Shown one piece after another: positions 32,284-61,398 of a DNA stretch of 64,000 bases. Every line of letters starts with the position of its first letter. Position 1 is the stretch's first letter. A model generated the notes under the pieces. The model ran no database searches and was not told the origin of the DNA. It saw only the letters and a program-made list of their open reading frames with translations. The stretch lies in IMG/VR virus record IMGVR_UViG_3300003322_000571, positions 286,090-350,089 of that record. One strand, 5' to 3'. Made by a program: the position numbers and the translations under genes.

Positions 32284-32337
32284 GGTGGGTATCCTTCTAC
32301 TAAGAATTAACCCACCTATTGTCTCACATTGTGGTTA

Positions 32338-32718
32338 CTAAGTCAACAAATGGTCTTCTTGGGTAACAAGCGACTGTTTGTCTTTGTTTTGCTTCTTCCA
32401 CCAACGTACAAGCGTCAATGATGTAGGAATCAAATAAGCGCTGTAGAATACGTTGATTACGACGATTGCGTCTGCGATTGTTGAAGCAAGATATGGCTCG
32501 CAGATCAAGTAAACAGCCATTAGCAAATTGGCTGCGATCATGAATTTGACGTTGCTCTTATCGGTTGGCCTGCAATGACGATTGCACTTTGTTGCAAAAC
32601 GAATCATGTTGCCATACGCAAACATCGCGTATGTTCCCCACGAAAGTACGAGAGCAGACCACAACGACAGAACGGTAGGTAGATTACTGAGAATCGCTTC
32701 CGTTGTAAGAGTATCCAT
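32338..32718 (-). CDS. multi-TM membrane protein
   Basis: AGGAG RBS; ends TAG TAA. Confidence 0.65.
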   Translation of the reverse strand: MDTLTTEAILSNLPTVLSLWSALVLSWGTYAMFAYGNMIRFATKCNRHCRPTDKSNVKFMIAANLLMAVYLICEPYLASTIADAIVVINVFYSAYLIPTSLTLVRWWKKQNKDKQSLVTQEDHLLT

Positions 32719-35038: not shown

Positions 35039-35043
35039 GTTTG

Positions 35044-35116
35044 AGCGGGCAAAGAGACTCGAACTCTCGACATTCACCTTGGCAAGGTGATGCTCTACCA
35101 ACTGAGCTATACCCGC
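35044..35116 (-). tRNA. tRNA-Gly(GCC)
   Basis: full cloverleaf, loop TTGCCAA; no encoded CCA. Confidence 0.92.
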
Positions 35117-35173: not shown

Positions 35174-35764
35174 TCAATTCAGTTTGATTGGCTTGAGGAT
35201 ACGGCTATCCTTACCGACCATCTTTGACAAGAATTCCATTTGATCCGCAAGGATGTTGCGGTTCATCAGGATCAGATATTCAGCACGATTCGGTGTGTAC
35301 GGGACATACAACAGCTTCATACCTGCTTCTTCGAGCGTACGGTCATCCTTACGCTTGTTGCAGTTGCCGCAAGCAGTGACAACGTTTGTCCATACGTCAG
35401 GACCGCCCTTCGAACGTGCTTGGACATGGTCGCGAGTCAACTTTTCAGGCTTGAACTCACCACCGCAGTAAGCGCAGATATGCTGGTCACGACGGAACAG
35501 CGCTTTGTTCGTCAGTGTTGGAACACGGAACAAGCCCTTATCGCCAACTTCACCCTTGACCGCAATGATCGTGTTCATGTCCATGAACGATTGCGTACCT
35601 GTGATTCGGTTTTCACCACCATAAATGGTGAATTGCGATTCAGTAGGTGTCCACGCAACGAGATCCTTTGCGTAGTAGTACGCAGCGTCTTCGTACGAGA
35701 TCCAGCGGCATGGATTGCCGCCTGCGTCAAGTTGTAGGATTAGCGGGTGTTCTCTCGCCATCAT
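35174..35764 (-). CDS. HNH endonuclease (McrA-like)
   Basis: CAYCG, TRDHV, GGPDVWTNVVTACGNCN.RK. Confidence 0.88.
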   Translation of the reverse strand: MMAREHPLILQLDAGGNPCRWISYEDAAYYYAKDLVAWTPTESQFTIYGGENRITGTQSFMDMNTIIAVKGEVGDKGLFRVPTLTNKALFRRDQHICAYCGGEFKPEKLTRDHVQARSKGGPDVWTNVVTACGNCNKRKDDRTLEEAGMKLLYVPYTPNRAEYLILMNRNILADQMEFLSKMVGKDSRILKPIKLN

Positions 35765-37032: not shown

Positions 37033-37264
37033 TAGCTCCGATTAACTGGTAATATTTTCCGTCGACCTTATAGCAGATATCCCAAGCTTGGAGAGAGGAG
37101 CCTTGATGGAACGGTTCAATTGACTGCTGATCAATTGCCTCGAGTACTTTGGTACGTGTTGCTTGATCGACTTCAACTTCTTCAAACCGAGCGATCGTTT
37201 TGCGAGCCCACTCGGAGATCCGATGTTGTTCATCTTTCGTTAGTTCGTCCCACGTCTTCATCAC
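36950..37264 (-). CDS. hypothetical protein
   Basis: 104 aa coupled to prs. Confidence 0.6.
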   Translation of the reverse strand: MMKTWDELTKDEQHRISEWARKTIARFEEVEVDQATRTKVLEAIDQQSIEPFHQGSSLQAWDICYKVDGKYYQLIGAIGSDQFTVNEIIDHYPEGGPVEQTYPT

Positions 37265-38274
37265 TTATCCATGATTTCCGAAATTGAACGACCGGTGTGA
37301 ATTCGGTTGATTGCCTCTGCGAGAGTATGTGCACAGCTGATCTGACGAACTTTCGACTTACTTTGAACGATCGTTGCTTCTTCGCGATCGTCCTCAGAAA
37401 TCTGAATCAGATTGACCGTTTCGAATTCAGAACGAAGCGGAATCGAGTCAGTGACAATCAGTTCTTCCAATAGGCTATTGTTCAGATTCTCGACAGCTGC
37501 GCCTGACAAAACACCGTGAGTTGCATACGCGATCACTCGGCGAGCACCGCCACGTTCAATAAGTGCGTTAGCAGCTTTAGCAAGAGTACCAGCGGTATCG
37601 ACCATGTCGTCAATAATGATGCAAGTGCGGTCGGTAACATCACCAATGATGTTCATCACTTCGGACACGTTTGCCTTCGGCCGACGCTTATCAACGATTG
37701 CAAGATCGATATCCTGTGCTAGTTTTGCAACATGCCGCGCACGCGCGACGCCACCAACGTCAGGAGAAACGATGATCGGATTTTCATCACGCCACTTGTG
37801 ATAGATGTCCGACACGAACAAATTGCTTGCAGTCAGATTGTCAACGGGAATGTGAAAGAAGCCTTGGATCTGTGTTGCATGCAGGTCAATCACCATTACA
37901 TGATCGACACCTGCACTTTGCAGAATGTCTGCAGTAACACGAGCAGAGATTGGAACGCGACTGAAACCCGGCCGGCGATCTTGCCGTGCATATCCGTAAT
38001 AAGGAATGACAGCAATCACTTTCTGTGCAGCTGAACGCTTGAGGGCGTCTGCCATTAGAGCAAGTTCCATCAGCGTATCGTTCGCAGGAGCACACGTTGG
38101 TTGAATCACATATGCATGGCAGCCACGAACGTTGTCACGAAGTTCGACACGAATCTCACCATCACTGAAGCGAGTGACTTCTGTTCGTTCCAGTTTGACG
38201 CCCAGTTTTTTCGCGACACCTTCGGCCAGTTTCGGGTTTGCAGTTCCCGCAAACAACTTCATTTCACCATTCAT
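37261..38274 (-). CDS. prs: ribose-phosphate pyrophosphokinase (class I PRPP synthetase)
   Basis: RFSDGE, PYYGYARQDR, DLHA.QIQGFF, SPDVGG, IDDMVDTAGTL. Confidence 0.95.
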   Translation of the reverse strand: MNGEMKLFAGTANPKLAEGVAKKLGVKLERTEVTRFSDGEIRVELRDNVRGCHAYVIQPTCAPANDTLMELALMADALKRSAAQKVIAVIPYYGYARQDRRPGFSRVPISARVTADILQSAGVDHVMVIDLHATQIQGFFHIPVDNLTASNLFVSDIYHKWRDENPIIVSPDVGGVARARHVAKLAQDIDLAIVDKRRPKANVSEVMNIIGDVTDRTCIIIDDMVDTAGTLAKAANALIERGGARRVIAYATHGVLSGAAVENLNNSLLEELIVTDSIPLRSEFETVNLIQISEDDREEATIVQSKSKVRQISCAHTLAEAINRIHTGRSISEIMDK

Positions 38275-38397
38275 ATATTGCTCCAGATCACTTTTTGGAG
38301 CGTGCATATTACACGGTGAATTTTCACCTTAAAACGAGCTTGAGTTGCTATATACATTAGCAAAGCACGTGTTTTACACACATATACAGGAGCTACA

Positions 38398-38967
38398 ATG
38401 GCAAGTTTTGACAAAGCGATTCCAGTCATCCTCCAACATGAGGGCGGATGGGTGAATAATCCAAATGATCCAGGTGGAGCAACGAACTACGGCATCTCAC
38501 TTCGTTTCTTGGCAGAACATCCGGAAGACGGTGACTTTGATGGAGACGGTGATGTTGATGCTGAGGACATCAAAGGAATGTCTGTGGACGATGCTAAGAA
38601 AATCTACAACAAGTACTGGTGGGTTAAGTACGGCTACGGCAAGTTGAACGATCAGACGATTGCTACAAAAGTATTTGACTTTTCTGTTAATATGGGAGCA
38701 TCACGTGCTCACAAACTTCTTCAGCAAGCTCTCAATAAGGCTTTTGGTTTGAAGTTGACAGTTGACGGGATCCTTGGTCCTGCGTCATTCAGCGTACTCA
38801 ATTCAATTGCTGATGGTGACCAAGAACAGAAACTGATCACTGCTTATTGTAATGAAGCGTGGGCATTCTACCAAGGTTTGGTAGCTAATAACCCTAAACT
38901 CGCTGTGTTCCAAAAAGGCTGGAAGAATCGCGCGTACAGCATCTCTGTTGCAAATACGTATAGTTGA
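38398..38967 (+). CDS. glycoside hydrolase family 108 endolysin with PG-binding domain
   Basis: HEGGWVN.PNDPGGATNYGI; VDGILGP; GWKNR. Confidence 0.92.
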   Translation: MASFDKAIPVILQHEGGWVNNPNDPGGATNYGISLRFLAEHPEDGDFDGDGDVDAEDIKGMSVDDAKKIYNKYWWVKYGYGKLNDQTIATKVFDFSVNMGASRAHKLLQQALNKAFGLKLTVDGILGPASFSVLNSIADGDQEQKLITAYCNEAWAFYQGLVANNPKLAVFQKGWKNRAYSISVANTYS

Positions 38968-39025: not shown

Positions 39026-39481
39026 ATGCCTGATTTTCCTACGTCTGTAGTGTTCCGCAAGTCTGATATCGGTATCGATATCGATGCTGTGGAGAAGCAC
39101 TATAACGCCACATTTGTTGGTGACTTTTGCTTGAAAGACCGCAATGGTCAATATGTCGAGCGAACTGTCGCTATCTTCTGGCAAGAGAAACCTCCTGTAG
39201 AAGGCTATAGTCATTATTTCGGTTTGCTAGTCAATATGAATGGCAATTTGGTAATCACATCCGGTCAATCGGCGTTTGACAAGGAGATTACTGCGCTCGT
39301 CACACCAGCGGGTGAAGTAGTATACAGCCGTCACCGTTGGGATTGTCGACAAGCTGAGACAGCCGGTTTCATGATCGACGGTGGTCGTGATTACACACGA
39401 ATTGTCGGTGATATTGGTCAGAGCCGTTGGGCTACACTCAAAATTGATGGTCCAACGATTAACATCGAGTACGCACCATGA
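39026..39481 (+). CDS. conserved phage hypothetical protein
   Basis: YSRHRWDC, MIDGGRDY. Confidence 0.7.
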   Translation: MPDFPTSVVFRKSDIGIDIDAVEKHYNATFVGDFCLKDRNGQYVERTVAIFWQEKPPVEGYSHYFGLLVNMNGNLVITSGQSAFDKEITALVTPAGEVVYSRHRWDCRQAETAGFMIDGGRDYTRIVGDIGQSRWATLKIDGPTINIEYAP

Positions 39482-40053
39482 AAATCGTCATCACAGGTAA
39501 CATTGGTTGCGGTAAGTCAACAGCGACTCGCGTAATCCATAGGATGCTGCCTGATTACTATCTGTTTGATTTTGATCATGTCGTGGCTAGTTTATATAGC
39601 GACGAAATTGTCCGAATGCAGCTGATCAATGCGTTTGGTACAGCAGATAAAGGACAAATCAGTGATATTGTGCATGCTGATCAAAAAGCAATGTTAAAAT
39701 TGCGCAGTATTACTGATGCAGCTATTTTGACCGCAATTTACTCAGCGAATAAAAGGGTTGATGTTATTTTTGACATCCCTTTGTATTTTGAGTTCAATGA
39801 TCTAATGCGTCTTAACCCTGACGCAGTTATTTGTGTCACTGCTGACGAAGCCAGTCAGATTGAGCGCGTAAAGGCGCGCAGCGGATTCTCTGAGGAAAAG
39901 ATTCGGTCTATCATTGCAAAACAGCTTCCTCAAGACGAGAAAGTTGCCAGAAGTGATTACCTTCTGCATAATGATGCTCCTTCAGCAGAAGTATTTGAGC
40001 AGGATGTCGCTGAGTTTATTGTGTTTCACCAAAACTTTGGATTTTTACGATGA
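39478..40053 (+). CDS. coaE: dephospho-CoA kinase
   Basis: ITGNIGCGKS, DIPLYFE, QIER..AR.G, QLP..EK. Confidence 0.85.
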   Translation: MKIVITGNIGCGKSTATRVIHRMLPDYYLFDFDHVVASLYSDEIVRMQLINAFGTADKGQISDIVHADQKAMLKLRSITDAAILTAIYSANKRVDVIFDIPLYFEFNDLMRLNPDAVICVTADEASQIERVKARSGFSEEKIRSIIAKQLPQDEKVARSDYLLHNDAPSAEVFEQDVAEFIVFHQNFGFLR

Positions 40054-40577
40054 AAACAGGTGTGATTGCTGGATCGTTTGATCCAATTACGAATGGTCAT
40101 CTTGGCTTGATTCATCAGGCTATTATGGCTGTTGACAAACTTCATATTGTTGTTGGCCACAATCCAACGAAGAAGTACATGTTTACCAGTGAAGAACGTC
40201 AGAAACTGATTCAAGATGTTCTTTTTCACAAATATGGTGAAGTTGCCGCCAAGGACATCAAGGTTGTGATTGCTGAACACGAATTGCTCGTCAATTATGC
40301 AGCTCGTGTTGGGGCGAGGTATTTGATCCGTGGTATTCGTAACGGTGCTGATTATCAGTACGAAGCGGAAATGGAACGGATTAATAAGGATATCAATCCG
40401 AGCATTGAAACGATGTTCTTTATGCCGACTCCTCGTATGTCGCAAATTAGCTCGTCGTCAGTTAAGGGACTTGTTGATTTCGAAGGCGCTGAGTCAACTG
40501 TTAAGAAATATGTGCACTCGATCGTGTACAAAGCAATGAAAGAGAAGATCAAACATGAGCGACAATCAAAGCGATAA
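40050..40577 (+). CDS. coaD: phosphopantetheine adenylyltransferase
   Basis: GSFDPITNGH, IRGIR...DYQYE, ISSSSVK. Confidence 0.92.
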   Translation: MKTGVIAGSFDPITNGHLGLIHQAIMAVDKLHIVVGHNPTKKYMFTSEERQKLIQDVLFHKYGEVAAKDIKVVIAEHELLVNYAARVGARYLIRGIRNGADYQYEAEMERINKDINPSIETMFFMPTPRMSQISSSSVKGLVDFEGAESTVKKYVHSIVYKAMKEKIKHERQSKR

Positions 40578-41745: not shown

Positions 41746-41762
41746 CAATGAAAGGATCTTTC

Positions 41763-42803
41763 ATGTCTTACAAGTACGACTTCCTCGTATTCATCGGCCG
41801 TTTCGAGCCATTCCATGTTGGCCACCTCCAGGTCATTCAATCTGCACTAAACCAAGCACAGAACGTAATTGTTCTTGTTGGCAGCAGCAATCAACCTCGA
41901 ACAGAAAAGAATCCGTTCACGTACGATGAACGTGTATCGATGATTTACTGGTCTTTGGAGGACTTGAATCCTGACCTTTCAGGTCGTGTCGAGGTAGTTC
42001 CTCTTCGTGACCAGAAGTATAATGACCAGAAATGGGCAGTTAACGTCCAGTCGATTGTTGATCACCGCGTCAAGTTCGTAACCCAAGGTGTGCAACGCAG
42101 TGCACGAGTTGGCTTGATTGGCCACACCAAGGATGAAAGCTCGTATTACCTGAAGATGTTTCCGCAGTGGGATCTGGTGGAACACGAGATGAACGAGGAA
42201 ATCAACGCAACTGATCTTCGTCGCTTGATCTACGAAGGTAAGAGTTTGAAGTTCCTGCAAGGTGTCGTGCCTCCAGCAGTTCACAGTCTTATCGAATCGT
42301 TCGTCAAGACACCTGAGTATCAATTGCTTGTCTCTGAGTACGAGATGATCAAGAAGTACAAGAAAGCATGGGAAGTCGCGCCATATCCACCGATTTTCGT
42401 CACTACCGATGCAATCGTTGTTCAGTCTGGTCACGTGCTATTGGTCGAGCGAGGTGCTGCACCAGGTAAAGGATTGTGGGCGTTGCCGGGTGGTTTCTTG
42501 GAGCAGAACTTGACTGTTCAACAGAACATGATTAAGGAGCTGCGTGAGGAAACGAAGCTGAAAGTGCCTGAGCCAGTATTGATTGGTAATATCAGGCAGT
42601 GGCGTGTGTTTGATCGCCCTGATCGCAGTGCTCGTGGACGTACAGTGACGCACGCAGCTCACATTGAACTTCCTGCTGGACCTCTTCCCCTTGTTAAGGG
42701 AGGCGACGATGCAGCGAAAGCACGGTGGGTGCCAATCGCAGAACTGCGCGAAGATAATATGTTCGAGGATCACTGGCACATCTTGATGCACTTCCTTGGA
42801 TAA
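41763..42803 (+). CDS. nadM: bifunctional NMN adenylyltransferase / ADP-ribose pyrophosphatase (NadM-Nudix)
   Basis: IGRFEPFHVGH, Nudix box PGGFLE...RELREET, GGDDAAKARW, FEDH. Confidence 0.94.
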   Translation: MSYKYDFLVFIGRFEPFHVGHLQVIQSALNQAQNVIVLVGSSNQPRTEKNPFTYDERVSMIYWSLEDLNPDLSGRVEVVPLRDQKYNDQKWAVNVQSIVDHRVKFVTQGVQRSARVGLIGHTKDESSYYLKMFPQWDLVEHEMNEEINATDLRRLIYEGKSLKFLQGVVPPAVHSLIESFVKTPEYQLLVSEYEMIKKYKKAWEVAPYPPIFVTTDAIVVQSGHVLLVERGAAPGKGLWALPGGFLEQNLTVQQNMIKELREETKLKVPEPVLIGNIRQWRVFDRPDRSARGRTVTHAAHIELPAGPLPLVKGGDDAAKARWVPIAELREDNMFEDHWHILMHFLG

Positions 42804-43487: not shown

Positions 43488-44425
43488 ATCGATTCAAACA
43501 ACGAAGTTAATTCAGCGATGTTTGATCAAAGCCAAGCTGTGAAGGGACTGGTTCGATTCCAGGTGTGAGTAACAGAAGCTCTATCAAGGACGGAGCGTCA
43601 TTGTTTGGTACGTTCTTTACAATTCAAGATTTGGGGCATAGCCCGGATAACTCCAGTGATGGAGCCAAAGCCTTAATGCTACATTATGGCGCCAGAAATG
43701 GTCAATCTATGCAAGCTCAGTTCTCTCCAGAAATGGAGGCTTCGTCGGGTTATCTGGCGGAGATAACTAGGAAATGAGTGTTGTGGAAAGAACACGAGGT
43801 CAAGTGCCACGCAAGTGGGAACACAACTGAGTGGAAAGCTGGGTGGTACCGGCTTCACAACAAACCAAACTCATCAGTAGGTAAGAACAAGAGTAGTGTC
43901 AATGTCCAAGCCGGCAAGCGAGGGCTATGATGCAGTTTGAGAGGTTAGTGGTGTGTGAAACATCATTGGTCTTGAAAAACAGTTGAGTAAGCGGCAGCTG
44001 AAAGACATGGAGGTGTGTTGTATTTTGGTGGTCAAAAGCCATCGAAGCAACTGGACGCACACATCTTCGTAGCGATTTCCGGTTAAAAACCGGGTAATTC
44101 ACGGTTTATGAATATCTTTAACGCAAAAGTTGCGTCCGGTGTTGTGTGAAAGTGGCTTAATTCTGTGGCAGCAATGTAACACAGACGTCTGAAGCTCGCA
44201 AGGCAGAGGATGTTGAAAGTGAGTCGCACGTTTGGCTAGGCATAGTCGAGCGGTAGACAAACTTCGAATAGCACAACGCGACGAGGTAACCGCCAACCTC
44301 TAAATAAGGCAGTCATGCAAGGTACTCTCATGAGAGAGTGGATAAGTGTAGAACCAATGGTGTAGCAGCCAAAGGATAATGACACAAAAGTCTTGTACCA
44401 ACCGATGTAATCTCAGTCGTTTGAC
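43488..44425 (+). ncRNA. large (~940 nt) ornate noncoding RNA (GOLLD/ROOL-like class candidate)
   Basis: no credible ORF between promoter and terminator; many short hairpins (GCAA, GAAA and ATGA loops) and a T-arm at 43548-43563. Confidence 0.7.
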
Positions 44426-46014: not shown

Positions 46015-46042
46015 AAAAAAGAGCGCCAATTGGCGCTCTTTT
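46015..46042. terminator. bidirectional terminator
   Basis: AAAAAA-GAGCGCC-AATT-GGCGCTC-TTTT. Confidence 0.85.
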
Positions 46043-46691
46043 ACATTGCGGCTTCTGTTCCCGCTAAGAATTGTCTAACAAGAGTGGCTCGTGTACTAAG
46101 AACAAACCAATTTTGTTGTTGACCAACGGTGAACATCGGCGGGCCAATGTCAATTACAGCCAACCCTTTGATCACACCAAACAGCTTGTATTGGCCATTT
46201 TCCTTACCAAACAATGCTCCACCTGACCCTCCAGGTGCTGTTGGTGTTGTTGAAATGATACTATTACCGTATAGTCCTTGGATCGTTCCCAGTGTCAATG
46301 TTTGAATCTTATAGTCAAGAAACATTGGGAAACCTACTGCGTACACAGGATCATCGATGATCACTTTGTTAGCAGTACTGATCGATGCACAAGGGCACTT
46401 GACATCTGCTGCAAGTAGAGCAAGATCATTGACTTGATCAACCTTGATCACACGAGCTGGCTTAAGACCATTGTCGTTGATATAAGCAATCTGCTTAGAT
46501 TTCGGTACTACGTGTGCGACAGTTAGCACATAACCTTCTTTAATCACGGTTCCCGACCCACTGGCTACGATATTCGTTTTTTCATCGCTAATCAACACCG
46601 GATAGACGTATTTCCTGGTGACAGAATAGTCGGCGGCCTGCGCCGAAGAAACAGCGAACAAGAGCATTGCGAAAAGTAGCCTGACAAACAT
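46041..46691 (-). CDS. secreted trypsin-like serine protease
   Basis: signal peptide; TVAHV, DLALL, PGGSGG triad motifs. Confidence 0.85.
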   Translation of the reverse strand: MFVRLLFAMLLFAVSSAQAADYSVTRKYVYPVLISDEKTNIVASGSGTVIKEGYVLTVAHVVPKSKQIAYINDNGLKPARVIKVDQVNDLALLAADVKCPCASISTANKVIIDDPVYAVGFPMFLDYKIQTLTLGTIQGLYGNSIISTTPTAPGGSGGALFGKENGQYKLFGVIKGLAVIDIGPPMFTVGQQQNWFVLSTRATLVRQFLAGTEAAM

Positions 46692-46778
46692 AGCTGTTCC
46701 CTAATATTGTTAACAAATATTTAGGTAAAAGGATGTTGAAAACGTGATAGGGTAAGCCTATCGTGATGTTTCTTTCAA

Positions 46779-46855
46779 GCTCTCTTAGCTCAATTGGTTA
46801 GAGCGGCGGTCTCTAAAACCGACGGCTACGGGTTCGAATCCCGTAGAGGGCACCA
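46779..46855 (+). tRNA. amber suppressor tRNA (anticodon CTA)
   Basis: full cloverleaf, loop CT-CTA-AA, encoded ACCA. Confidence 0.88.
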
Positions 46856-46878: not shown

Positions 46879-48210
46879 ATGACAGTTTCTACACGTAAGA
46901 TGTACGTGGGTATTGCTCGCGACCATTCTAGTTCAATGGGCAGCCTGCGTGCACCCGCAATGCGCGACTTCAACAGACAAGTCGATGATCTGATTCAACA
47001 GGCGAATCTGCACGGTATCGACGTTGTCGCCAGCGTTGTGTCGTTTGCTGACACTGTTAAGCGTGAAGTGACGATTTCGTCGATCAATGCGCTCAAGAAG
47101 CTGACGTCGTATCCTACGTCTGGCTGGACTGCACTGTACGATGCGATCAATGATCTGCACACGCAATTTAGCGCAATGCCTGACTTCAACAACGAAGACG
47201 TTCAGGTCGTCATCTTCGCGATCACTGACGGTGAAGAAAATGCTTCATCGATCAAGGCAACCGAACTTCGCGCCAAGCTGCAGAAGTTCCACGCTACCGG
47301 CCGCGGCACTGTCGTCATTCGTGTTCCGAACGGTCATCGCTCCAGCATCGCATATAGCCTCGGTATTCCCGAAGGCAATATCGACGAATGGGACCAGAAC
47401 GAACGCAGCCTCAACGAATCGTCTGCCAAGACGTCAGCTGGCGTCGCCAAGATGTTCAGTGATGCGAAGGCAGGTATCAAGTCGACGACCGGCTTCTACA
47501 CCGACCTGAGCAATGTCACTGCAAAGGACGTCAAGGCTGTTGCCAAGGACATCAGTGGTGAAGTTTCGCTGTGGACGGTCAAGAACGCAACGGAAGGCAA
47601 CACAATCCGTGGCTTCTGCGAACTGAAGAGTGGTAAGCCGTTCCTCAAGGGTGGCGCTTACTACCAGCTGATGAAGCCGGAAAGCGAAGTCCAAGACTAC
47701 AAGCAGATCGCTCTTCGCGACAAGACGACTGGTCATGTGTATGCCGGTGACGGTGTTCGTGCACTGCTCGGCTTGCCTGCACACGGCACGGTTAAGGTTG
47801 TTCCTGGTGACCACGGCAACTACGACATCTTCATCCAGTCGACGTCGGTCAACCGTAAGCTGCCTGTTGGCACGACGGTTCTGTACCGCACGAGCACTGG
47901 TGTCGCGTACAAGGAAGGCGCCAGCGCTCCAAAGACGAACCTGCCGACGCCGGTGCAAGCAACCGCACCTGCAACTTCGAAGGCGACAGCGTCTCCGTAC
48001 GCAGCTGTGAAGCCAGCACCGGCTCCGAAGCCTGTTGTTCCAGCAAAGACAGCAGTTGCTCAAGGTCGTCGTCTTGACGTGTACACGATGGGCTACAAGG
48101 ATGGTCGTGGCAAGAAGAAGAACCGTAAGGCGGACTTCAGCGCACTGGAAACGACAATCTACCAAGAAGGTTTCGCTGACGGTAAGGCGAAGAAGCCAAG
48201 CAAGTACTGA
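46879..48210 (+). CDS. von Willebrand factor A domain protein with Pro/Ala linker and basic tail
   Basis: MIDAS DHSSSM, TALYDAI, ITDGEEN. Confidence 0.85.
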   Translation: MTVSTRKMYVGIARDHSSSMGSLRAPAMRDFNRQVDDLIQQANLHGIDVVASVVSFADTVKREVTISSINALKKLTSYPTSGWTALYDAINDLHTQFSAMPDFNNEDVQVVIFAITDGEENASSIKATELRAKLQKFHATGRGTVVIRVPNGHRSSIAYSLGIPEGNIDEWDQNERSLNESSAKTSAGVAKMFSDAKAGIKSTTGFYTDLSNVTAKDVKAVAKDISGEVSLWTVKNATEGNTIRGFCELKSGKPFLKGGAYYQLMKPESEVQDYKQIALRDKTTGHVYAGDGVRALLGLPAHGTVKVVPGDHGNYDIFIQSTSVNRKLPVGTTVLYRTSTGVAYKEGASAPKTNLPTPVQATAPATSKATASPYAAVKPAPAPKPVVPAKTAVAQGRRLDVYTMGYKDGRGKKKNRKADFSALETTIYQEGFADGKAKKPSKY

Positions 48211-50756: not shown

Positions 50757-51884
50757 ATGGAACTGTACAATCAACTGATGGCGCTGACGCAAGATGGCGA
50801 TGCTTTCTACTTCCAGGACTTCGAACTGGATCGTGTGAAGTATCGTATCTTCAACTACCGTCTCGCTTCGTACAGCGACTTCCTGAAGCCAGGCGCTCTG
50901 GAGTGCCGTGGCATCATGTTTGATATCACCGACGGTATTGCTGAACTTGTTGCACGTCCGATGCAGAAGTTCTTCAATCTGAACGAAAATCCGATGACGA
51001 TGAACCTCGATCTGTCGCAAGTCGACACGGTTGAGCTGAAGGCTGACGGTTCGTTGATGTCAACGTTCATTCATTGGACTGATTCTGGTCCGATGCTTCG
51101 TCTCAAGTCGAAGGGTTCGCTGTTCTCTGAACAAGCAATCGACTCGCTGAAGTGGCTCACTGACCACGATCCGGAACTGAAGCATCATCTGTTCATGGTG
51201 ACGCTCGATGGCTACACGGTCAATCTCGAGTGGTGCGCTCCGTTCAACCGGATCGTGATTGGTTATGAAAAGCCGCACCTGAAAATCCTGAACGTTCGCA
51301 AGATGGAAACCGGCGAATACATGCCGCGTGTTGTGATCGAAGATCGTTTCCGTAACCCGGATTGGATCATCGACCGCGTCCGTACAGACGGCCTCAACAC
51401 GGCTGATTTCGTCAAGTCGATCCCTGCGCTGCAAGACGACATTGAAGGTTACGTGTGCCGTATCGGTGACCTGTGGTTCAAGGTCAAGACCGAGAAGTAC
51501 ATGTCGCTTCACCACGCGAAGGATTCTGTCAACAATCCACGTCGTCTGTTTGAAGCAATCATCGACGAAGGAATCGATGACCTTCGCTCAATGTTTGCAC
51601 AAGATGCACTCGCGATGAAGTTGATCGACGAGATGCAAGAGAAGGTTACACGGATGTACAACAGTGTTGTTCGTCAAGTGGAAGACTACTACAGTGCGAA
51701 CAAGGCGAAGGAACGCAAGGATTATGCGATCGGTGCACAGACGCTGTCGATTGACGGTGTCAAGCTGATGTCACTCGCGATGAACCTGTACATCGGCCGT
51801 GATCCTGGTTTCAAGGACTTCCTCAAGGGGAAGTACAAGGAACTCGGCTTCAAAGATACGTCGGTTGACAAGAAAGAAGACTGA
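50757..51884 (+). CDS. RNA ligase 1 (T4 Rnl1-like)
   Basis: IFNYRLASY, LECRG, PMQKFFNLNE, KADGSL, EGYV, WFKVKT. Confidence 0.92.
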   Translation: MELYNQLMALTQDGDAFYFQDFELDRVKYRIFNYRLASYSDFLKPGALECRGIMFDITDGIAELVARPMQKFFNLNENPMTMNLDLSQVDTVELKADGSLMSTFIHWTDSGPMLRLKSKGSLFSEQAIDSLKWLTDHDPELKHHLFMVTLDGYTVNLEWCAPFNRIVIGYEKPHLKILNVRKMETGEYMPRVVIEDRFRNPDWIIDRVRTDGLNTADFVKSIPALQDDIEGYVCRIGDLWFKVKTEKYMSLHHAKDSVNNPRRLFEAIIDEGIDDLRSMFAQDALAMKLIDEMQEKVTRMYNSVVRQVEDYYSANKAKERKDYAIGAQTLSIDGVKLMSLAMNLYIGRDPGFKDFLKGKYKELGFKDTSVDKKED

Positions 51885-55841: not shown

Positions 55842-55917
55842 GGTGACGTTAGTGTAGTGGTTCGCATTACTGTCTGTGAAACAGTAGGAACGGGTTCAAT
55901 CCCCGTACGTCACCCCA
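55842..55917 (+). tRNA. tRNA-His(GTG) with encoded G-1, C73, CCA
   Basis: cloverleaf; loop CTGTGAA. Confidence 0.92.
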
Positions 55918-55934
55918 ATGAACATTAGAATTAT

Positions 55935-56026
55935 GGAGGCATGGATGAGTGGTTTATATCGCTTCCCTGCTAAGGAAGAGCTCGGCGAAAGTCGGGCCGT
56001 GGGTTCGAATCCCACTGCCTCCTCCA
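55935..56026 (+). tRNA. tRNA-Ser(GCT)
   Basis: long variable arm, CCA. Confidence 0.92.
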
Positions 56027-56039
56027 ATGTGTGTAGTGT

Positions 56040-56111
56040 CAGGGTAGAAGGCGTTTGGTAGCCACTTAGCTTTGGAAGCTTTGAGTCTCAGTTCGATTCT
56101 GAGTATCCTGA
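56040..56111 (+). tRNA. tRNA-Pro(TGG)
   Basis: C1-G72, A73; weak anticodon stem; no CCA. Confidence 0.7.
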
Positions 56112-56129
56112 CAGTGCACATATTACAAT

Positions 56130-56203
56130 AGGGGAATGGTGTAGCGGTAACACAACTGGCTTTGACCCAGTCATCCCAGGTTCGAATCCTGGTTCCCTTG
56201 CCA
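56130..56203 (+). tRNA. tRNA-Gln(TTG)
   Basis: cloverleaf, CCA. Confidence 0.9.
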
Positions 56204-56213
56204 ACTGATTTCT

Positions 56214-56285
56214 AGGGAAGTAGTGTAGCGGCTATCACCTCTGGTTCTGACCCAGACAACACAGGTTCGAGTCCTGTCTTCCCTG
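56214..56285 (+). tRNA. tRNA-Gln(CTG)
   Basis: cloverleaf, no CCA. Confidence 0.88.
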
Positions 56286-56365
56286 CAGAGAAACATGCTT
56301 GCATGTAACGACCGAGTCAACGACATGAACTGTGCAGACGTAGTAGTGTTCTTGATTCATTCCTT

Positions 56366-56436
56366 ACTCACCGCCGTCGGAACGGTTCTGTGTCTACGAA
56401 ACACGGATTTGGAGGTTCGAATCCTCTCGGTGGGTC
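56366..56436 (+). tRNA. tRNA-Arg(ACG), atypical D arm
   Basis: loop CTACGAA, T arm; D arm GCCGT-CGGA-ACGGT. Confidence 0.6.
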
Positions 56437-56440
56437 AAAT

Positions 56441-56514
56441 GTCTCCATAGCTCAGCGGATTAGAGTAACACGCTACGAACGTGTTGGTCGGGGGTTCGAA
56501 TCCCTCTGGAGGCT
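56441..56514 (+). tRNA. tRNA-Arg(ACG)
   Basis: canonical cloverleaf. Confidence 0.92.
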
Positions 56515-56573
56515 CAAAAGAGTTGATATGTAAAAGGTTACAAAGTAAAGTTTACATATCAGTTTCCAAATCT

Positions 56574-56646
56574 GGTGCACTCGGCTCTCTGGGAGACCAC
56601 TTCACTGTCTATGAAGGCTAGACGGGTTCGATTCCCGTGTGCATCG
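56574..56646 (+). tRNA. tRNA-Asp(GTC)
   Basis: loop CTGTCTA, T arm. Confidence 0.75.
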
Positions 56647-56652
56647 CAAATG

Positions 56653-56829
56653 TGTGTTTAAGACTGTCGCACGCCAAAAGGCACAGTGGGTTAAGTCTTA
56701 CTTCATGTCTTTACTTGTTGGCGCAAGTATAACATGTTGTCCATTAGTACAGTGGTAGTACGTCGCCTATAACGGCGAAGACGCGGGTTCGATTCCCGTA
56801 TGGAATTTTTGACGACAGCCTTAAACACA
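56653..56829 (+). ncRNA. end-clamped RNA containing a tRNA-like domain (56740-56804)
   Basis: 17-bp terminal helix (1 mismatch); D, anticodon-like (6-nt loop) and T arms inside. Confidence 0.6.
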
Positions 56830-56830
56830 T

Positions 56831-56875
56831 GGTTCGTTAGCATAGTCTGGCTTAATGCGCTTGCCTGTCACGCAG
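56831..56875 (+). pseudogene. 5' fragment of tRNA-Asp(GTC) truncated by HNH cassette
   Basis: acceptor 5' strand, D arm, CTGTCAC loop; no T arm or 3' strand. Confidence 0.7.
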
Positions 56876-56913
56876 TTCGAAGGTGACAGTCATAAATATC
56901 GTCAGAGGTGTTT

Positions 56914-57330
56914 ATGGAAACAAAAGTGTGTTCGGCTTGTAAGGTTAACAAATCGTTGAGTGAGTACAACAAGTACAAGCGATCAAAGGATGGGTTAGAT
57001 TATCGTTGCAAATTGTGTCAGCGCAATTCAAACAAGAGTTGGGTTGAAAACAATTGGGAGCGTAAGCTAGCACAGCAAACTGATCGACGTTCTCAACTAC
57101 TGACACAGTTGAGAGAGTTCAAAAGAACTGCTGGTTGTAGATGCTGTCCTGAAACCGAGCCGGTGTGCTTGGAACTGCATCACCTTGATCCGAATGAGAA
57201 GGAAATTGATCCTTCAAGTATGGTAAGTCAAGGTTGGAGCTGGGAACGCATGAAGAGTGAAATTGATAAGTGTGTAGTCTTGTGTAGTAACTGTCACAAG
57301 AAAGTACATGCGGGATTGTTGGAAATTTAA
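56914..57330 (+). mobile_element. free-standing HNH homing endonuclease in tRNA array
   Basis: CSAC..CKLC, CRCC..LELHHLDP..KCVVLCSNCHKKVH; CATAAATA at 56891, AGAGG RBS. Confidence 0.85.
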
Positions 57331-57332
57331 TT

Positions 57333-57407
57333 GGTCTCAAGGTGTTCATGGACGCATACGGCACTGTCACTGCTGAGGAGGGGGATCGTTACCCCCTGGG
57401 ACCGCCA
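57333..57407 (+). tRNA. tRNA-Asp(GTC)
   Basis: cloverleaf, variant T loop ATCGTTA, CCA. Confidence 0.85.
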
Positions 57408-57410
57408 AAT

Positions 57411-57583
57411 GTCTTCTTAGTGTAAAGGCTCAATGCTAGCTGTTGAGGTTACGGAAATGAAAGACTACAATTAATCGGTTGTGAATCGGCCGATAACTCA
57501 TCCGCGAGATTGTAGGAGATAATCAACGTGATGCACCTCATTCCCTAAGAATGAATGAGATGGTTCGATTCCATCAGAAGACA
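57411..57583 (+). ncRNA. tRNA-shaped RNA with ~109-nt structured D-loop insertion
   Basis: acceptor GTCTTCT/AGAAGAC, D stem GTGT/GCAC, anticodon arm TCATT-CCCTAAG-AATGA, T arm. Confidence 0.7.
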
Positions 57584-57588
57584 CAAAT

Positions 57589-57670
57589 GTAGTTGCTGTC
57601 CTCGGAGAGACTTGCTCGCGAATACGCTTGCTGAAAAGTACCTGAGTAGGTTCGAATCCTACCAACTACA
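57589..57670 (+). pseudogene. degenerate tRNA-like element
   Basis: acceptor GTAGTTG/CAACTAC and T arm intact; anticodon arm unpaired. Confidence 0.55.
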
Positions 57671-57671
57671 C

Positions 57672-57829
57672 TAATACGTCAATGCGGTATGAACGCAAGC
57701 CGGATGGGAGGTCTACATTCGGTGTCAGACGCTGTCGAGAGAAAGTAGACGTTGACCTCGAAGCGCCCTCGGGGGCTGAGTCAGAGAGTTGGTGCAACAG
57801 GCTGCAATCTGCCAATCCAACACGTATTA
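57672..57829 (+). ncRNA. unassigned structured RNA
   Basis: TAATACGT/ACGTATTA closing helix with internal helices. Confidence 0.5.
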
Positions 57830-57834
57830 AATTT

Positions 57835-57916
57835 GGATCATTATACTCCTATGGACGGAGACCAGATTGTAATCCTGGTGCCTTTGGCTGGGTAGGTTCG
57901 ATTCCTACATGATCCA
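57835..57916 (+). tRNA. tRNA-Tyr(GTA)
   Basis: loop TTGTAAT, variable arm. Confidence 0.75.
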
Positions 57917-57926
57917 CTAAGATGTT

Positions 57927-58117
57927 ATATGTCGGCTCTTGAGACATCGCAACTCGTGAGAGATGCTATTAGCGTCGACATTAATTCCGGGACAACACGA
58001 TGGCGCGCTCAGTCATAACGTAAAACCGGAGCCTATCTGAGCAATAGGTAAAGTCTTCGATTGTACGGCAGGCTTCTATAATAGTGGCCAGGAACTCGAA
58101 GCCAAGAGCCGACATAT
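57927..58117 (+). ncRNA. unassigned ~190-nt RNA closed by a perfect 15-bp helix
   Basis: ATATGTCGGCTCTTG/CAAGAGCCGACATAT. Confidence 0.65.
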
Positions 58118-58124
58118 GACATCG

Positions 58125-58196
58125 GGGGAGGTCGTTTAGCGTTCAAGACACTGGCCACTAAAGCCAGCGACGATGGTTCGAATCCATCCCTCCCCA
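58125..58196 (+). tRNA. tRNA with CTA anticodon and non-canonical A33
   Basis: CTGGC-CACTAAA-GCCAG; full cloverleaf; no CCA. Confidence 0.65.
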
Positions 58197-58202
58197 CAAA
58201 TT

Positions 58203-58285
58203 GGATCGCGAGTGGCATTGGTGACTACAGCTGACTGTAAATCAGCCGCCTTCGGGCATACTAGGTTCGATTCCTAGGCGATCCA
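58203..58285 (+). tRNA. tRNA-Tyr(GTA)
   Basis: loop CTGTAAA, variable arm GCC-TTCG-GGC. Confidence 0.9.
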
Positions 58286-58419
58286 CAAAGTGATGGTCGG
58301 CGAGGTACGCTGTTCAGTCGATCATCGAAATTCCCTACAGGCGTACTGCAAAGGGATGCTTACCAAACTTGAGGCGGCGGAAGCACGACCTCGGAAACTA
58401 GAAGTAGTTTCCAACCTTT

Positions 58420-58503
58420 GTCCCGTGATGACTGCTGGTAACGGTCAGTAGCCTTTCAAGCTACCGCCTTTGTGCTGGGGTTCGATTCCCCCACGGGATA
58501 CCA
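58420..58503 (+). tRNA. tRNA-Glu(TTC) with enlarged variable region
   Basis: GTAGC-CTTTCAA-GCTAC, CCA. Confidence 0.75.
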
Positions 58504-58505
58504 AT

Positions 58506-58581
58506 GATGAGGTAGCTCAGAGAAAGAGTGCTGTCCCCGCAAGGGCAGAGGCCGGAGGTTAAAGTCCTTCTCTCATCTCCA
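58506..58581 (+). tRNA. tRNA-like, anticodon loop of 6 or 8 nt (identity unclear)
   Basis: acceptor, D arm, T loop TTAAAGT, CCA. Confidence 0.55.
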
Positions 58582-58582
58582 T

Positions 58583-58656
58583 GACGTGTTGGCCGATCGG
58601 TTAGGTGTGAAGCTGCAACCTTCACCAGGCAGGTTCGATTCCTGCACACGTCTCCA
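58583..58656 (+). tRNA. tRNA-Cys(GCA)
   Basis: U73, CCA, loop CTGCAAC. Confidence 0.92.
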
Positions 58657-58812
58657 AACTTGATTACGGAAAGTTTATCGTGAAGATGAAATGGAAAGTG
58701 CTGAAACGCATTAACAGCGGTAAATTGTTCGAGTATACGAGTTGGTGTTACGGTTCTGAATCAATCTGCTTCTGGAAGTGGGAGCTTGTGATTCATAACA
58801 GAAGGAAATAAC

Positions 58813-59037
58813 ATGAAGTTGGTTCTTGATCTAGATGATGATCAAATCAAAGCATTGATGGCATTGTCGGACACAACGGATCCAGCGGTTTTGACAAATG
58901 AAAGTTTGTCAATTTTGAAATGGATGATCAAGGAAACTATCAAAGGTCGCGCGATCGTATCGTGTGATTATGATGGTGGCGACTTGAAGCAGTTGAAAAC
59001 ACCTGTGCTGAATCGCACAAAGGCAAAGTTCAATTGA
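58813..59037 (+). CDS. hypothetical protein (RHH-like possible)
   Basis: AAGGA RBS, 74 aa. Confidence 0.6.
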   Translation: MKLVLDLDDDQIKALMALSDTTDPAVLTNESLSILKWMIKETIKGRAIVSCDYDGGDLKQLKTPVLNRTKAKFN

Positions 59038-59042
59038 ACAAT

Positions 59043-59114
59043 GCCCCCGTAGTTTAGTGGCTAGAACGACGCCCTTTCAAGGCGTAGAAGACGGATCGTA
59101 ACCGTTCGGGGGTA
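59043..59114 (+). tRNA. tRNA-Glu(TTC)
   Basis: cloverleaf, T loop ATCGTAA. Confidence 0.85.
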
Positions 59115-59120
59115 CATATT

Positions 59121-59192
59121 GGTAACGAGGCTGAATGGTTAAGCAGGAGTCTCATAAGCTCTGTGTCGTGGGTTCGATTCCCACTGTTACCA
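59121..59192 (+). tRNA. tRNA-Met/Ile2(CAT)
   Basis: loop CTCATAA. Confidence 0.85.
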
Positions 59193-59197
59193 CTAAT

Positions 59198-59270
59198 AGG
59201 TTGTTCGCGGGCCGCGGACTTGTAGTCTCCAAAACTCATAGGGACAGTTCGACTCTGTCACAGCCTGCCA
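59198..59270 (+). tRNA. tRNA-Trp(CCA)
   Basis: loop CTCCAAA, G73, CCA; short D arm. Confidence 0.75.
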
Positions 59271-59272
59271 TT

Positions 59273-59345
59273 CCCCTCCTAGCTAATCTGGTGAGAGCGA
59301 CCGTTTGAAACGCAGTAGAGACTGGTTCGATTCCAGTGGTGGGGA
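59273..59345 (+). tRNA. tRNA-Phe(GAA)
   Basis: loop TTGAAAC; mismatches in stems. Confidence 0.7.
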
Positions 59346-59348
59346 CAT

Positions 59349-59819
59349 ATGAATCCAAGATACAGTAAGCAACGTCGCGCAACCACGTGTGGACCAACTG
59401 CTGTGATCAATGCGATGAAGTGGAAGGATCCACGGATTTCGTACACAAAAATAATTGACAAGGTTGCGAAACAGTGTAAACAGCAGAAAGATGGAAGCAG
59501 TTACACTAATATTGCTTCAGCGTGCCGTGCTAACGGGTTCAAAGCGTTTATTCGCAGGTATCCATCGATTGATTTTATTCGCCAGCAATTGTTGAAAGGA
59601 AAGTCAATCATTTTGTTGTACAGACATCCAAAAGACTTTTGGCCTGAATATAACCATTTTGTATTCATTCCTGAGTACAATAAAGAGTTTACAGTAGTCA
59701 ACGGTCATGTGTATGACAACCTTGAAGAAGAACGAGAGACGGTTGTGATGTATGACGATCATACGTTCAACAATAGAATATCAAAGAGACAACGTCACGC
59801 TGTGATTGTGTTGTCGTAA
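59349..59819 (+). CDS. C39-like cysteine peptidase
   Basis: Q..TTCGPTAVINA, NHFV, N. Confidence 0.7.
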   Translation: MNPRYSKQRRATTCGPTAVINAMKWKDPRISYTKIIDKVAKQCKQQKDGSSYTNIASACRANGFKAFIRRYPSIDFIRQQLLKGKSIILLYRHPKDFWPEYNHFVFIPEYNKEFTVVNGHVYDNLEEERETVVMYDDHTFNNRISKRQRHAVIVLS

Positions 59820-59821
59820 CT

Positions 59822-59894
59822 GCCGCTTAAGCTAATCTGGTGAAAGCGCTAGTTTGAAACACTAGAGAGACAGGCTCGAAACCTGTAGGCGGCA
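59822..59894 (+). tRNA. tRNA-Phe(GAA)
   Basis: CTAGT-TTGAAAC-ACTAG. Confidence 0.85.
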
Positions 59895-59907
59895 CAAAGG
59901 AATAAGT

Positions 59908-60090
59908 ATGAACACATTACTTGCTTGGAGTCATTTTGCAATTGGCGACTTTTTCTGTCGTTTATTGTCCCTAAATGACGATAACGAAAAATGGGTGAAT
60001 ATGTTCTTCGGCTTGTATCAATATCATATGAGTCGGAGTGTTGAAATCCAAGATCAGTTTGGCTTAGCTGGACCTTGGGATCCTAAATAA
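59908..60090 (+). CDS. hypothetical protein
   Basis: AAGGA RBS, 60 aa. Confidence 0.5.
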   Translation: MNTLLAWSHFAIGDFFCRLLSLNDDNEKWVNMFFGLYQYHMSRSVEIQDQFGLAGPWDPK

Positions 60091-60108
60091 GGCAACGGAG
60101 GTTGTCTT

Positions 60109-60267
60109 ATGAAGATCAAAGAGCTAATTCGTGAGTTTGTCGAACAACGCAACGGTAAGTGGGTAGTGCTTGATCACACCAAGAAAAAGGTGTTGGGAAC
60201 GCATGATACCAAAGACGAAGCGGACAGGCAGCTTGCAGCTATTGAGATCAATAAGCACAAACACTAA
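60109..60267 (+). CDS. small hypothetical protein (MKIKELIREF...)
   Basis: GGAGG RBS, TAAATA at 60084; 52 aa. Confidence 0.6.
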   Translation: MKIKELIREFVEQRNGKWVVLDHTKKKVLGTHDTKDEADRQLAAIEINKHKH

Positions 60268-60347
60268 CCCTTCGTGGCAAATGTAAATTGGTACAGCTAC
60301 TACGTTCAGACCGTAGGCTTTTGTCGGTTCGAATCCGACCGAAGGGA
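60268..60347 (+). tRNA. tRNA-Leu(CAG)
   Basis: CTACG-TTCAGAC-CGTAG. Confidence 0.88.
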
Positions 60348-60352
60348 CAAAG

Positions 60353-60604
60353 ATGAGTAAGGCTTCAGAAATTGAGCGAACACTTCACTGTTTGATCGAC
60401 ACACTCGAAAAGCTAGATCCAAAAGGTGATCCACTCGCTTGTAATTATGCAAAGATGCTGATCGATAAGTCGCACGACTATATGCTCGATGTGATTGCAG
60501 ATTTGGATGATGAGACTGAAGAAGGTAAGCAAGTTGCTGTGGTGATTGATCGTTACCGTAAAACGATCATGTTGCTTGACTCTTACGACAAATGTGAAGT
60601 ATGA
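60353..60604 (+). CDS. hypothetical protein
   Basis: 83 aa. Confidence 0.55.
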   Translation: MSKASEIERTLHCLIDTLEKLDPKGDPLACNYAKMLIDKSHDYMLDVIADLDDETEEGKQVAVVIDRYRKTIMLLDSYDKCEV

Positions 60605-60849
60605 TTTACGTAGATAAGCCAACGTGGAAGAAACCAAACGGACGAAAGTATTTCGCTCATATGGTTGCTGACACTGTTGAAGAGTTACATCAGTTCGCTG
60701 AACTGATTGGTGTGAAGAAACATTTCTTCCATCGCGGTGATAAACCTCACTACGACATCAGTGTGGATCAGCATGCTGCGGCGATAGCAAACGGTGCTGT
60801 CGAAGTTAGTACCAAACAGATCGTTGCGGTAATAACGCAACGGAAGTAA
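60601..60849 (+). CDS. DUF4031-like protein
   Basis: IYVD, HMVADT.EELHQFA..IG, PHYDI. Confidence 0.75.
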   Translation: MIYVDKPTWKKPNGRKYFAHMVADTVEELHQFAELIGVKKHFFHRGDKPHYDISVDQHAAAIANGAVEVSTKQIVAVITQRK

Positions 60850-60932
60850 AGTCTAAAAAAGAAAACGTCATCCAGAACGATATCTGGCTGCTCGAACGGC
60901 AACGGTGAGAGCGTAAGGTGACAGTTGTACAA

Positions 60933-61006
60933 GCGGCCATGGTGTTGAAGGGTTAGCACGAGACCTTGCCAAGGTTTAGGTCCGAGTTCGAATCTCGGTG
61001 GCCGCT
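60933..61006 (+). tRNA. tRNA-Gly(GCC)
   Basis: AGACC-TTGCCAA-GGTTT, U73. Confidence 0.88.
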
Positions 61007-61310
61007 CAGACAGGTTCTCACCCGTTGCTGGGGAGGGTCGGTACGATGGATTGTTCTGCGATACGTACCAACAGACTTCGCGCATTCAAGAGTAAGCGAA
61101 CATGAGGAATGCTGGAACCTGACCAAGATCCCCCACACTTGGAAATGTGTTGACGCGTTCAGTCTATAAAACACTGAACTGGTTGAGACGGATAACCACT
61201 AACTGAAACCGTCTTCGTTTGAGTTTTAGTTCCATATTGGCGGTACGGAAGTCGCTGGTTATGCTGGTAGGTAAAGCTACAAGTTTGTGTAGGATGCACA
61301 GGCGGTCAAT

Positions 61311-61398
61311 GCGGAAGTGATGGAATTGGTAGTCTTGCCATGTTGAGCGCGTGGTGTCCGCTAAGGGCGTGTGGGTTCGAATCCCATCTTCCGCACCA
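61311..61398 (+). tRNA. tRNA-Leu(GAG)
   Basis: long variable arm, CCA. Confidence 0.85.

Follow-up and report, generated by a model that had tools for sequence, protein, structure and literature searches.

A conserved candidate amber suppressor tRNA in an XacN1-like jumbo phage with few TAG stop codons

We analyzed a stretch of 64,000 nucleotides (the window) at the very end of a 350,089-bp contig from a root metagenome sample; partial matches occur in rhizosphere and soil runs, and a run search not directed at RNA found DNA metagenomes only. An exact search with the SUP1 tRNA described below hit this one viral contig, IMGVR_UViG_3300003322_000571, and exact protein matches put window position w at contig position 286089 + w, so that the window spans contig positions 286090 to 350089. 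The phage is a T4-superfamily jumbo phage of the clade that holds XacN1, Xoo-sp13, RAS14, and RsoM2USA, relatives that infect Xanthomonas, Stenotrophomonas, and Ralstonia. The capsid protein, aligned over 99% of its length, is 61.6% identical to that of XacN1, 60.6% to that of Xoo-sp13, 57.5% to those of Stenotrophomonas CM1 and RAS14, and 50.2% to that of Ralstonia RsoM2USA; all other capsid matches are at or below 36%. A megablast search with 20 kb found no near-identical phage in GenBank. The window covers the replication and nucleotide metabolism region, encoding topoisomerase II subunits, NAD-dependent DNA ligase, ribonucleotide reductase, a DnaB-like helicase, thymidylate synthase, DHFR, PhoH, two RNA ligases, a Thg1-like enzyme, Acb1, NAD salvage functions, and an endolysin. 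Several of these genes form recognizable sets. A tRNA repair set (31489 to 32283, minus strand; 50757 to 51884, plus strand; 23395 to 24561, minus strand) comprises a Thg1-like tRNA-His guanylyltransferase (Pfam, 5e-29), a T4 Rnl1-type RNA ligase, and a second RNA ligase whose N terminus also matches HNH endonuclease families. A nucleotide and NAD salvage block (37264 to 38307, minus strand; 39478 to 40574, plus strand; 41748 to 42800, plus strand) encodes PRPP synthetase, a CoaE-like kinase, a cytidylyltransferase-like protein, and a NadR-like NMN adenylyltransferase-NUDIX fusion, and these lie in the same order in a close relative (L055, described below). The Acb1 anti-CBASS phosphodiesterase homologue is encoded at 22758 to 23285 on the minus strand (Pfam, 4.5e-34).

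The features around which the analysis turns, in window positions, are the following.

32335 to 32718 (coding part 32341 to 32718), minus strand: conserved 126-aa membrane protein, the sole TAG-ended gene in the window
38398 to 38967, plus strand: endolysin with GH108 and PG_binding_3 domains, intact in code 11 and ending in TGA (Pfam, gene model)
46041 to 46691, minus strand: trypsin-like peptidase gene, left border of the tRNA slot (Pfam Trypsin_2, 1e-17)
46736 to 46764, plus strand: sigma70-like match TTGAAA-17-TATCGT, ending 14 nt before the 5′ end of SUP1 (consensus scan)
46779 to 46855, plus strand: SUP1, tRNA with anticodon CUA (ARAGORN, Rfam, sequence)
46879 to 48210, plus strand: vWA-domain protein gene, right border of the slot (Pfam VWA, phrog_26613)
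55843 to 64000, plus strand: array of more than 20 tRNAs, several degenerate, cut by the contig end
58125 to 58197, plus strand: SUP2, a second tRNA-CUA inside the array (ARAGORN; Rfam, 57.5 bits)

SUP1, with anticodon cta, is one of 25 RNA genes that ARAGORN calls in the window. It scores 68.4 bits against the Rfam tRNA model (RF00005; gathering threshold, 29) over model positions 1 to 71, the second-best tRNA score in the window. It has all the features of an elongator tRNA: a cloverleaf with a 7-bp acceptor stem, an ordinary D loop carrying G18G19, the T-loop TTCGAAT, and a 7-nt anticodon loop, C32-U33-CUA-A37-A38, that supplies U33 and a purine at position 37. Positions 34 to 36 are CUA, the hallmark of an amber suppressor; the discriminator is A73, the CCA end is encoded in the DNA (ACCA), and a G27·A43 mismatch sits at the top of the anticodon stem. 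The initial annotation had described a complete tRNA with this loop and an encoded ACCA, and ARAGORN, Rfam, and the sequence itself bear that out. The same anticodon loop context, CUA between C32-U33 and A37-A38, is found in E. coli laboratory amber suppressors, which came from mutation or design in TAG-using cells and carry a cost, whereas SUP1 is a natural phage gene in a TAG-purged genome.

ARAGORN's label for this gene, Pyl, is merely its name for the anticodon CUA. A pylT-type tRNA has a small D loop without G18G19, a 3-nt variable loop, and a long anticodon stem, and goes with pylS and pylBCD genes. The ordinary D loop with G18G19, 5-nt variable loop, and short anticodon stem of SUP1 exclude that identity, and Pfam scans of 40 window proteins found no Pyl genes. 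The nearest tRNA types are Lys, Arg, Val, Thr, and Met, at 0.70 to 0.78 with no clear winner; Gln- and Trp-type tRNAs, which have G73, are more distant. Descent from tRNA-Trp by a C35-to-U change was also dropped, since the discriminator is A73 rather than G73 and other types lie nearer than Trp. Amber suppressors of E. coli with U35 tend toward charging with Gln or Lys, and by this analogy, together with the Lys/Thr-like body and A73, our guess is that SUP1 would carry Lys or Gln.

SUP1 is solitary: it lies between the protease and vWA genes, 9 kb upstream of the array. The terminator scan gave no match between SUP1 and the vWA gene, so that co-transcription of the two is possible. The slot is shared with a relative represented by 338-kb and 198-kb contigs from ENA and Logan assemblies (L055), whose capsid protein is 94.7% identical to that of this phage and whose vWA protein is only 51% identical. 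There, too, a tRNA-CUA lies between a minus-strand trypsin-like peptidase gene and a plus-strand vWA gene (orthologue P0021), and a sigma70-like match (TTGACT-17-TAATAT) lies 12 nt before it; matches of this kind, to the consensus only, occur at roughly background frequency, and it is their shared position alone that gives them weight. The two tRNAs are 81% identical. Their acceptor stems differ at five positions per strand with pairing kept, and the anticodon and T arms are conserved. More distant vWA relatives in IMG/VR (31 to 43% identical) have no tRNA-CUA within 10 kb.

Suppressor tRNAs of this type have been described in the clade before. XacN1 carries two CUA suppressors per terminal repeat, for which in silico readthrough gave its authors no target (Yoshikawa et al. 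2018, PMC5852040), RsoM2USA carries one (PMC8504454), and RAS14 is annotated with a tRNA-Sup-CTA (GenBank OP752703) that is a 74% blastn match to SUP1. The present phage resembles all three in its clade membership (capsid identity, 50 to 62%) and in having one or two tRNA-CUA genes in or near a very large tRNA set, and it resembles XacN1 and RAS14 in its standard code, few amber stops, and a nearby GOLLD RNA. It differs from XacN1 and RAS14 in the suppressor sequence, which is only 74 to 80% alike with different stems, and from XacN1 in arrangement: the conserved copy here is solitary, whereas that of XacN1 is a tandem pair inside the array in the terminal repeat. TAG depletion, synteny, and position 27:43 lay outside the tests in the XacN1 and RsoM2USA papers (PMC5852040, PMC8504454).

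An alignment of SUP1 with XacN1 copies A and B, RAS14, and the 338-kb relative shows a common anticodon loop, CUCUAAA, mostly A73, and an unpaired 27:43. All five clade copies lack a pair at this position (G·A in SUP1, G·G in the relative, A·C in both XacN1 copies, and G·A in RAS14), and across the fetched loci a nonpair is found in 6 of 13 distinct CUA tRNAs versus 16 of 163 other phage tRNAs (Fisher p = 0.002). A 2026 NAR paper (PMC13092985) reports that a Thr-derived CUA tRNA with a natural G27-A43 mismatch, as in SUP1, reads UAG better than one with a 5-bp stem; with 27:43 unpaired throughout the clade, the anticodon arm of SUP1 therefore looks tuned for suppression. The D-arm-plus-loop pattern of SUP1 also occurs on 11 other viral IMG/VR contigs with a similar tRNA-CUA (L037 to L047), which represent a broad type and not close kin. 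At these loci 20 of 129 ORFs end in TAG by crude gene models and one contig (L044) gains coding density under code 15; some of these may be truly recoded phages.

SUP2 had been overlooked in the initial annotation. SUP2 is noncanonical: it has A33 in place of U33 and lacks both G18G19 and a CCA end, so that U33 and G18G19, two of the elongator features present in SUP1, are missing. It is most similar to the phage's own Gln tRNAs (66 to 69%), finds no homologue among GenBank phages or within the covered part of the relative's array, and lacks a counterpart among the suppressors of XacN1, RsoM2USA, and RAS14; it may be a recent or decaying copy. Matches to a 17-mer of its anticodon arm on three other contigs were set aside as chance, none of them being a tRNA. 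The surrounding array holds other unusual members, such as a tRNA-like gene at 56738 to 56807 (plus strand; Rfam tRNA, 44.8 bits) to which ARAGORN gives the four-base anticodon ataa and which may be either a frameshift-type tRNA or a copy in decay, and a degenerate Asp tRNA at 57333 to 57407 with the T-loop ATCGTTA. Far from the array, a very canonical lone tRNA-Gly(GCC) (35043 to 35116, minus strand; 69.9 bits) has an HNH endonuclease gene (35177 to 35764, minus strand) as its neighbor. In RAS14, near an HNH-interrupted tRNA region (L051, 17134 onward), ARAGORN calls an ochre-reading tRNA (anticodon tta) with a poor T-loop. The contig stops inside a tRNA (63937 to 64000), and a test for a terminal repeat located the final 39 nt at no second place in the contig, which gives no sign of a repeat or of circularity. 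The XacN1 array sits in 66-kb direct terminal repeats, and the assembly here may therefore have broken in, or collapsed, such a repeat.

Other structured RNAs accompany the suppressors in this clade. A GOLLD RNA (44008 to 44419, plus strand; Rfam, 207 bits) precedes SUP1 by 2.4 kb, and GOLLD is likewise found 2.4 to 5 kb from tRNA-CUA in XacN1 (L052, 38570 to 38983), RAS14 (L051, 18048 to 18473), and the 338-kb relative (L055, 6690 to 7127), where a tRNA-Gly follows directly. The window also encodes a permuted two-piece tmRNA of the betaproteobacterial type (18426 to 18817, minus strand; beta_tmRNA, 126 bits; tag ANEGNFRLAA), adjoined by a ClpP-like protease gene (17569 to 18366, minus strand). 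XacN1 shares the permuted tmRNA (L052, 37177 to 37621; tag ANANTFDYALAA), there close to its tRNA-CUA genes, in the order sup-sup-ORF-tmRNA-GOLLD-tRNA-Gly within 3 kb.

Stop codons were counted with a home-made, codon-usage-based gene model that was checked against JGI gene calls. The 79 complete genes that it finds in the window end in TAA (50) or TGA (29) and never in TAG. One real gene escaped the model, that of the 126-aa membrane protein, which the source record does call. Here TAG (32338 to 32340) is directly followed on the minus strand by TAA (32335 to 32337), so readthrough adds one residue, and homologues of the protein stop at the same residue; the single TAG stop backed by TAA that had been picked out earlier is thus real. 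Within genes, TAG occurs 99 and 86 times in the two other frames, and it occurs 501 times antisense and is common between genes as well, which excludes avoidance at the DNA level (e.g., of CTAG) and makes the scarcity specific to stop positions.

Our reading extended to 128,094 bp of the one contig (to position 221,996), or 37% of the 350,089-bp record. The model places 126 genes there (TAA, 79; TGA, 46; TAG, 1), and with the 126-aa gene added, 2 of 127 genes in the 128 kb end in TAG (1.6%; 95% CI, 0.2 to 5.6%). The independent JGI calls give 1 of 67, a spurious 23-aa ORF in the tRNA array. By the same model, TAG ends 36 of 423 genes (8.5%) in 27 distantly related IMG/VR loci, a baseline of short loci taken regardless of their own suppressor status, and 10 of 97 in 50 kb of XaC1; Fisher p is 0.005 against either. 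The strength of the result depends on the null, the probability of two or fewer among 127 being 1e-3 at 8.5% and 0.04, a marginal value, at 5%. At a GC content of 47%, NAG makes up 46% of sense NAR codons, and the same third-base preference would put TAG at about 37 of the 81 TAR stops. Of the initial annotation's near-total avoidance of TAG, the depletion stands, while "near-total" says too much. The pattern extends to relatives: TAG ends 1 of 74 annotated genes around the RAS14 tRNA-Sup and 2 of 45 genes in the 338-kb relative (2 TAG stops among 16 late genes, despite the same tRNA), and amber stops number 18 of 592 in XacN1 (PMC5852040). The four tRNA-bearing members pool to 23 of 838 (2.7%) versus 36 of 423 (p = 1e-5); TAG depletion is a trait of the clade and may in part be an inherited codon bias.

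The second TAG stop lies outside the window and ends a 57-aa ORF (contig 237756 to 237929; L050, 5144 to 5317). At its junction (…TAG ATG…), the ATG opens an in-frame 205-aa gene of the late region (pair, contig 237756 to 238544; L050, 5144 to 5935), so that readthrough would give a fusion ending at the normal stop. The tRNA might thus serve programmed readthrough of single phage genes, here producing a 263-aa fusion isoform; the junction keeps both ORFs in one frame, and both are conserved, again in frame, in a relative (L053). In that relative, however, which has the same tRNA, the small ORF ends in TAA and two codons precede the ATG. Homologues of the 205-aa protein are 201 to 219 aa long and never fused, which also means that the pair is not a split gene, and a single in-frame neighbor is expected by chance one time in three. 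We regard programmed readthrough as highly improbable and read both TAG survivors as tolerated contexts, a remark on two cases.

TAG is not a sense codon in any of the conserved genes that we read, whether for replication, head, neck, tail, baseplate, packaging, or the endolysin. In the 64 kb next to the window, code 11 reads straight through each of the following late genes: the large terminase (524 aa), tail sheath (575 aa), gp15-like and gp13-like (982 aa) proteins, major capsid protein Gp23 (473 aa), prohead protease, portal (559 aa), the baseplate genes (T4_baseplate, a 515-aa gp5-like hub, a gp25-like protein, and a 1,127-aa gp6-like wedge), a 990-aa transglycosylase protein, and a 795-aa tail-fiber-like protein. 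The capsid protein aligns with that of XacN1 in one piece over 99% of its length. Also intact is a 3,239-aa ORF (contig 264274 to 273993; L017, 7091 to 16810) that matches "virion structural protein" phrog_10938 (2e-60); homologues of this protein occur on 17 other IMG/VR contigs at 33 to 54% identity. Coding density over 128 kb is 0.8574 in code 11 and 0.8518 in code 15, and the internal TAGs that appear under code 15 are spurious 5′ extensions and one stop-start junction of two separate genes. Neither RF2 nor a dedicated aminoacyl-tRNA synthetase was found among 40 window proteins (Pfam) or in the JGI Pfam marks for contig positions 221996 to 297732. The initial annotation had held that the window does not use TAG as a sense codon, and this holds; it had also offered recoding of TAG in late genes beyond the window, a reading that the intact hallmark genes and the lack of any gain under code 15 leave unsupported, and the rise in density and the phage synthetase or RF2 that it had proposed to look for did not appear in the parts covered.

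Code-15 phages (crAss-like, Lak, and other gut phages; 10.1101/2021.08.26.457843, PMC9523058, PMC13037316) are like this one in carrying a phage tRNA-CUA, in not using TAG as a terminator, and in keeping replication genes in the standard code. TAG could on that model be a sense codon in some genes of the remaining 222 kb, such as a holin, a spanin, or small late genes, with the suppressor timing their translation; recoded phages do often combine standard replication genes with a tRNA-CUA, and gene reading here spans 37% of the contig. The gene classes that such phages recode (portal, capsid, terminase, tail, lysis) are intact here, though, with no in-frame TAG in the structural, packaging, and lysis genes read and no density gain; the window proteins scanned include no release factor or synthetase gene; and GC content is 47% rather than low. 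XacN1, moreover, a cultured and fully annotated relative, reads in the standard code with 592 proteins. We consider code 15 elsewhere in this genome very unlikely.

The account that we favor, at about an even chance with the doubt mostly on the target, is that of a conserved, active suppressor in a standard-code phage that has purged TAG from its own genes, with TAG-ended targets that are not the phage's own. SUP1 would be a genuine, conserved amber suppressor of XacN1-like jumbo phages, probably expressed early and apparently transcribed, along with the vWA gene downstream, from a putative sigma70-type promoter of its own. Its anticodon arm, with C32-U33-CUA-A37-A38 and an unpaired 27:43, would suit efficient reading of UAG. 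That it is charged and active during infection would be the simplest reason for both the TAG purge and the conservation of the gene. As TAG is almost purged as a terminator, with two survivors where readthrough should cost little, the phage proteome would be insulated from its own suppressor. No phage gene that we saw needs SUP1, and the likeliest targets would therefore be TAG-ended host, prophage, or co-infecting-phage messages, whose protein products would be lengthened or translated past their stops. Such a role against the host or a competitor is plausible, although the sequence itself gives no sign of the forced readthrough of host TAG-ended genes that the initial annotation had proposed. 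T4-type phages shut down host gene expression early, and a host-directed suppressor would for that reason achieve less.

Two further explanations do without a dedicated target. Borges et al. (10.1101/2021.08.26.457843) proposed, as precursors of recoding, phages that keep the standard code while one stop is depleted and a suppressor has been gained; by that model TAG would have become rare first, and SUP1 would be near neutral or an insurance that buffers amber mutations, in a lineage poised for, or reverted from, TAG recoding. Such precursor phages have been described, among them standard-code relatives with a TGA suppressor (Agate phage) that resemble the present case in combining the standard code, a depleted matching stop, and the suppressor, and no target was found here or in XacN1. 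Those cases are TGA-based, from low-GC gut phages with close recoded sisters, whereas no recoded member of the present clade is known or was seen, and the model ties depletion to low GC, whereas here GC is 47% and NAG is 46% of NAR codons. The tRNA here is also old enough to be shared across genera: it has stayed in a single slot, its stems compensated, over deep divergence and is present in XacN1, RAS14, and RsoM2USA, which argues for selection over neutrality and makes the precursor or insurance model, in our judgment, rather unlikely. It is less likely still that the tRNA is inactive or does not decode (a decoy, a primer, or an RNA-processing signal), with TAG scarcity an unrelated codon bias of the lineage. 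TAG is the rarest stop in many phages, the depletion reaches just P = 0.04 under the 5% null, and SUP2 and several array tRNAs look degenerate; SUP1, though, is among the best-scoring tRNAs of the window with every canonical feature and a CCA end, its anticodon loop is invariant while the stems covary, and the four tRNA-bearing members pool to 2.7% TAG versus 8.5 to 10% in the outgroups.

To return to a suppressor aimed at messages other than the phage's own, in its strongest form, an improbable one, it would be an offensive tool. With TAG stops kept out of its own genes, the phage would flood the cell with an efficient suppressor, ribosomes on TAG-ended host, prophage, or co-infecting-phage messages would run into 3′ regions, and the tmRNA, the ClpP-like protease, and perhaps the GOLLD RNA would tag and clear, or exploit, the products; the tie of tmRNA and ClpP to readthrough products is speculation.

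The suppressor belongs to a published type, that of XacN1 and RsoM2USA, to which this analysis adds a test of TAG depletion across the clade, a demonstration that hallmark genes are not recoded, the synteny of the slot, and the 27:43 feature. The purge of TAG, the unrecoded hallmark genes, the conservation of the slot, and position 27:43 argue that the tRNA is probably active and under selection and that its target would lie outside the phage's conserved genes. This bears on an open puzzle, namely why a standard-code phage carries a stop codon suppressor at all, and the cultured relatives XacN1, RAS14, and RsoM2USA make the role of the suppressor directly testable. If the offensive reading were true, these phages would interfere through a dialect of the genetic code that is private to them, with no recoding.
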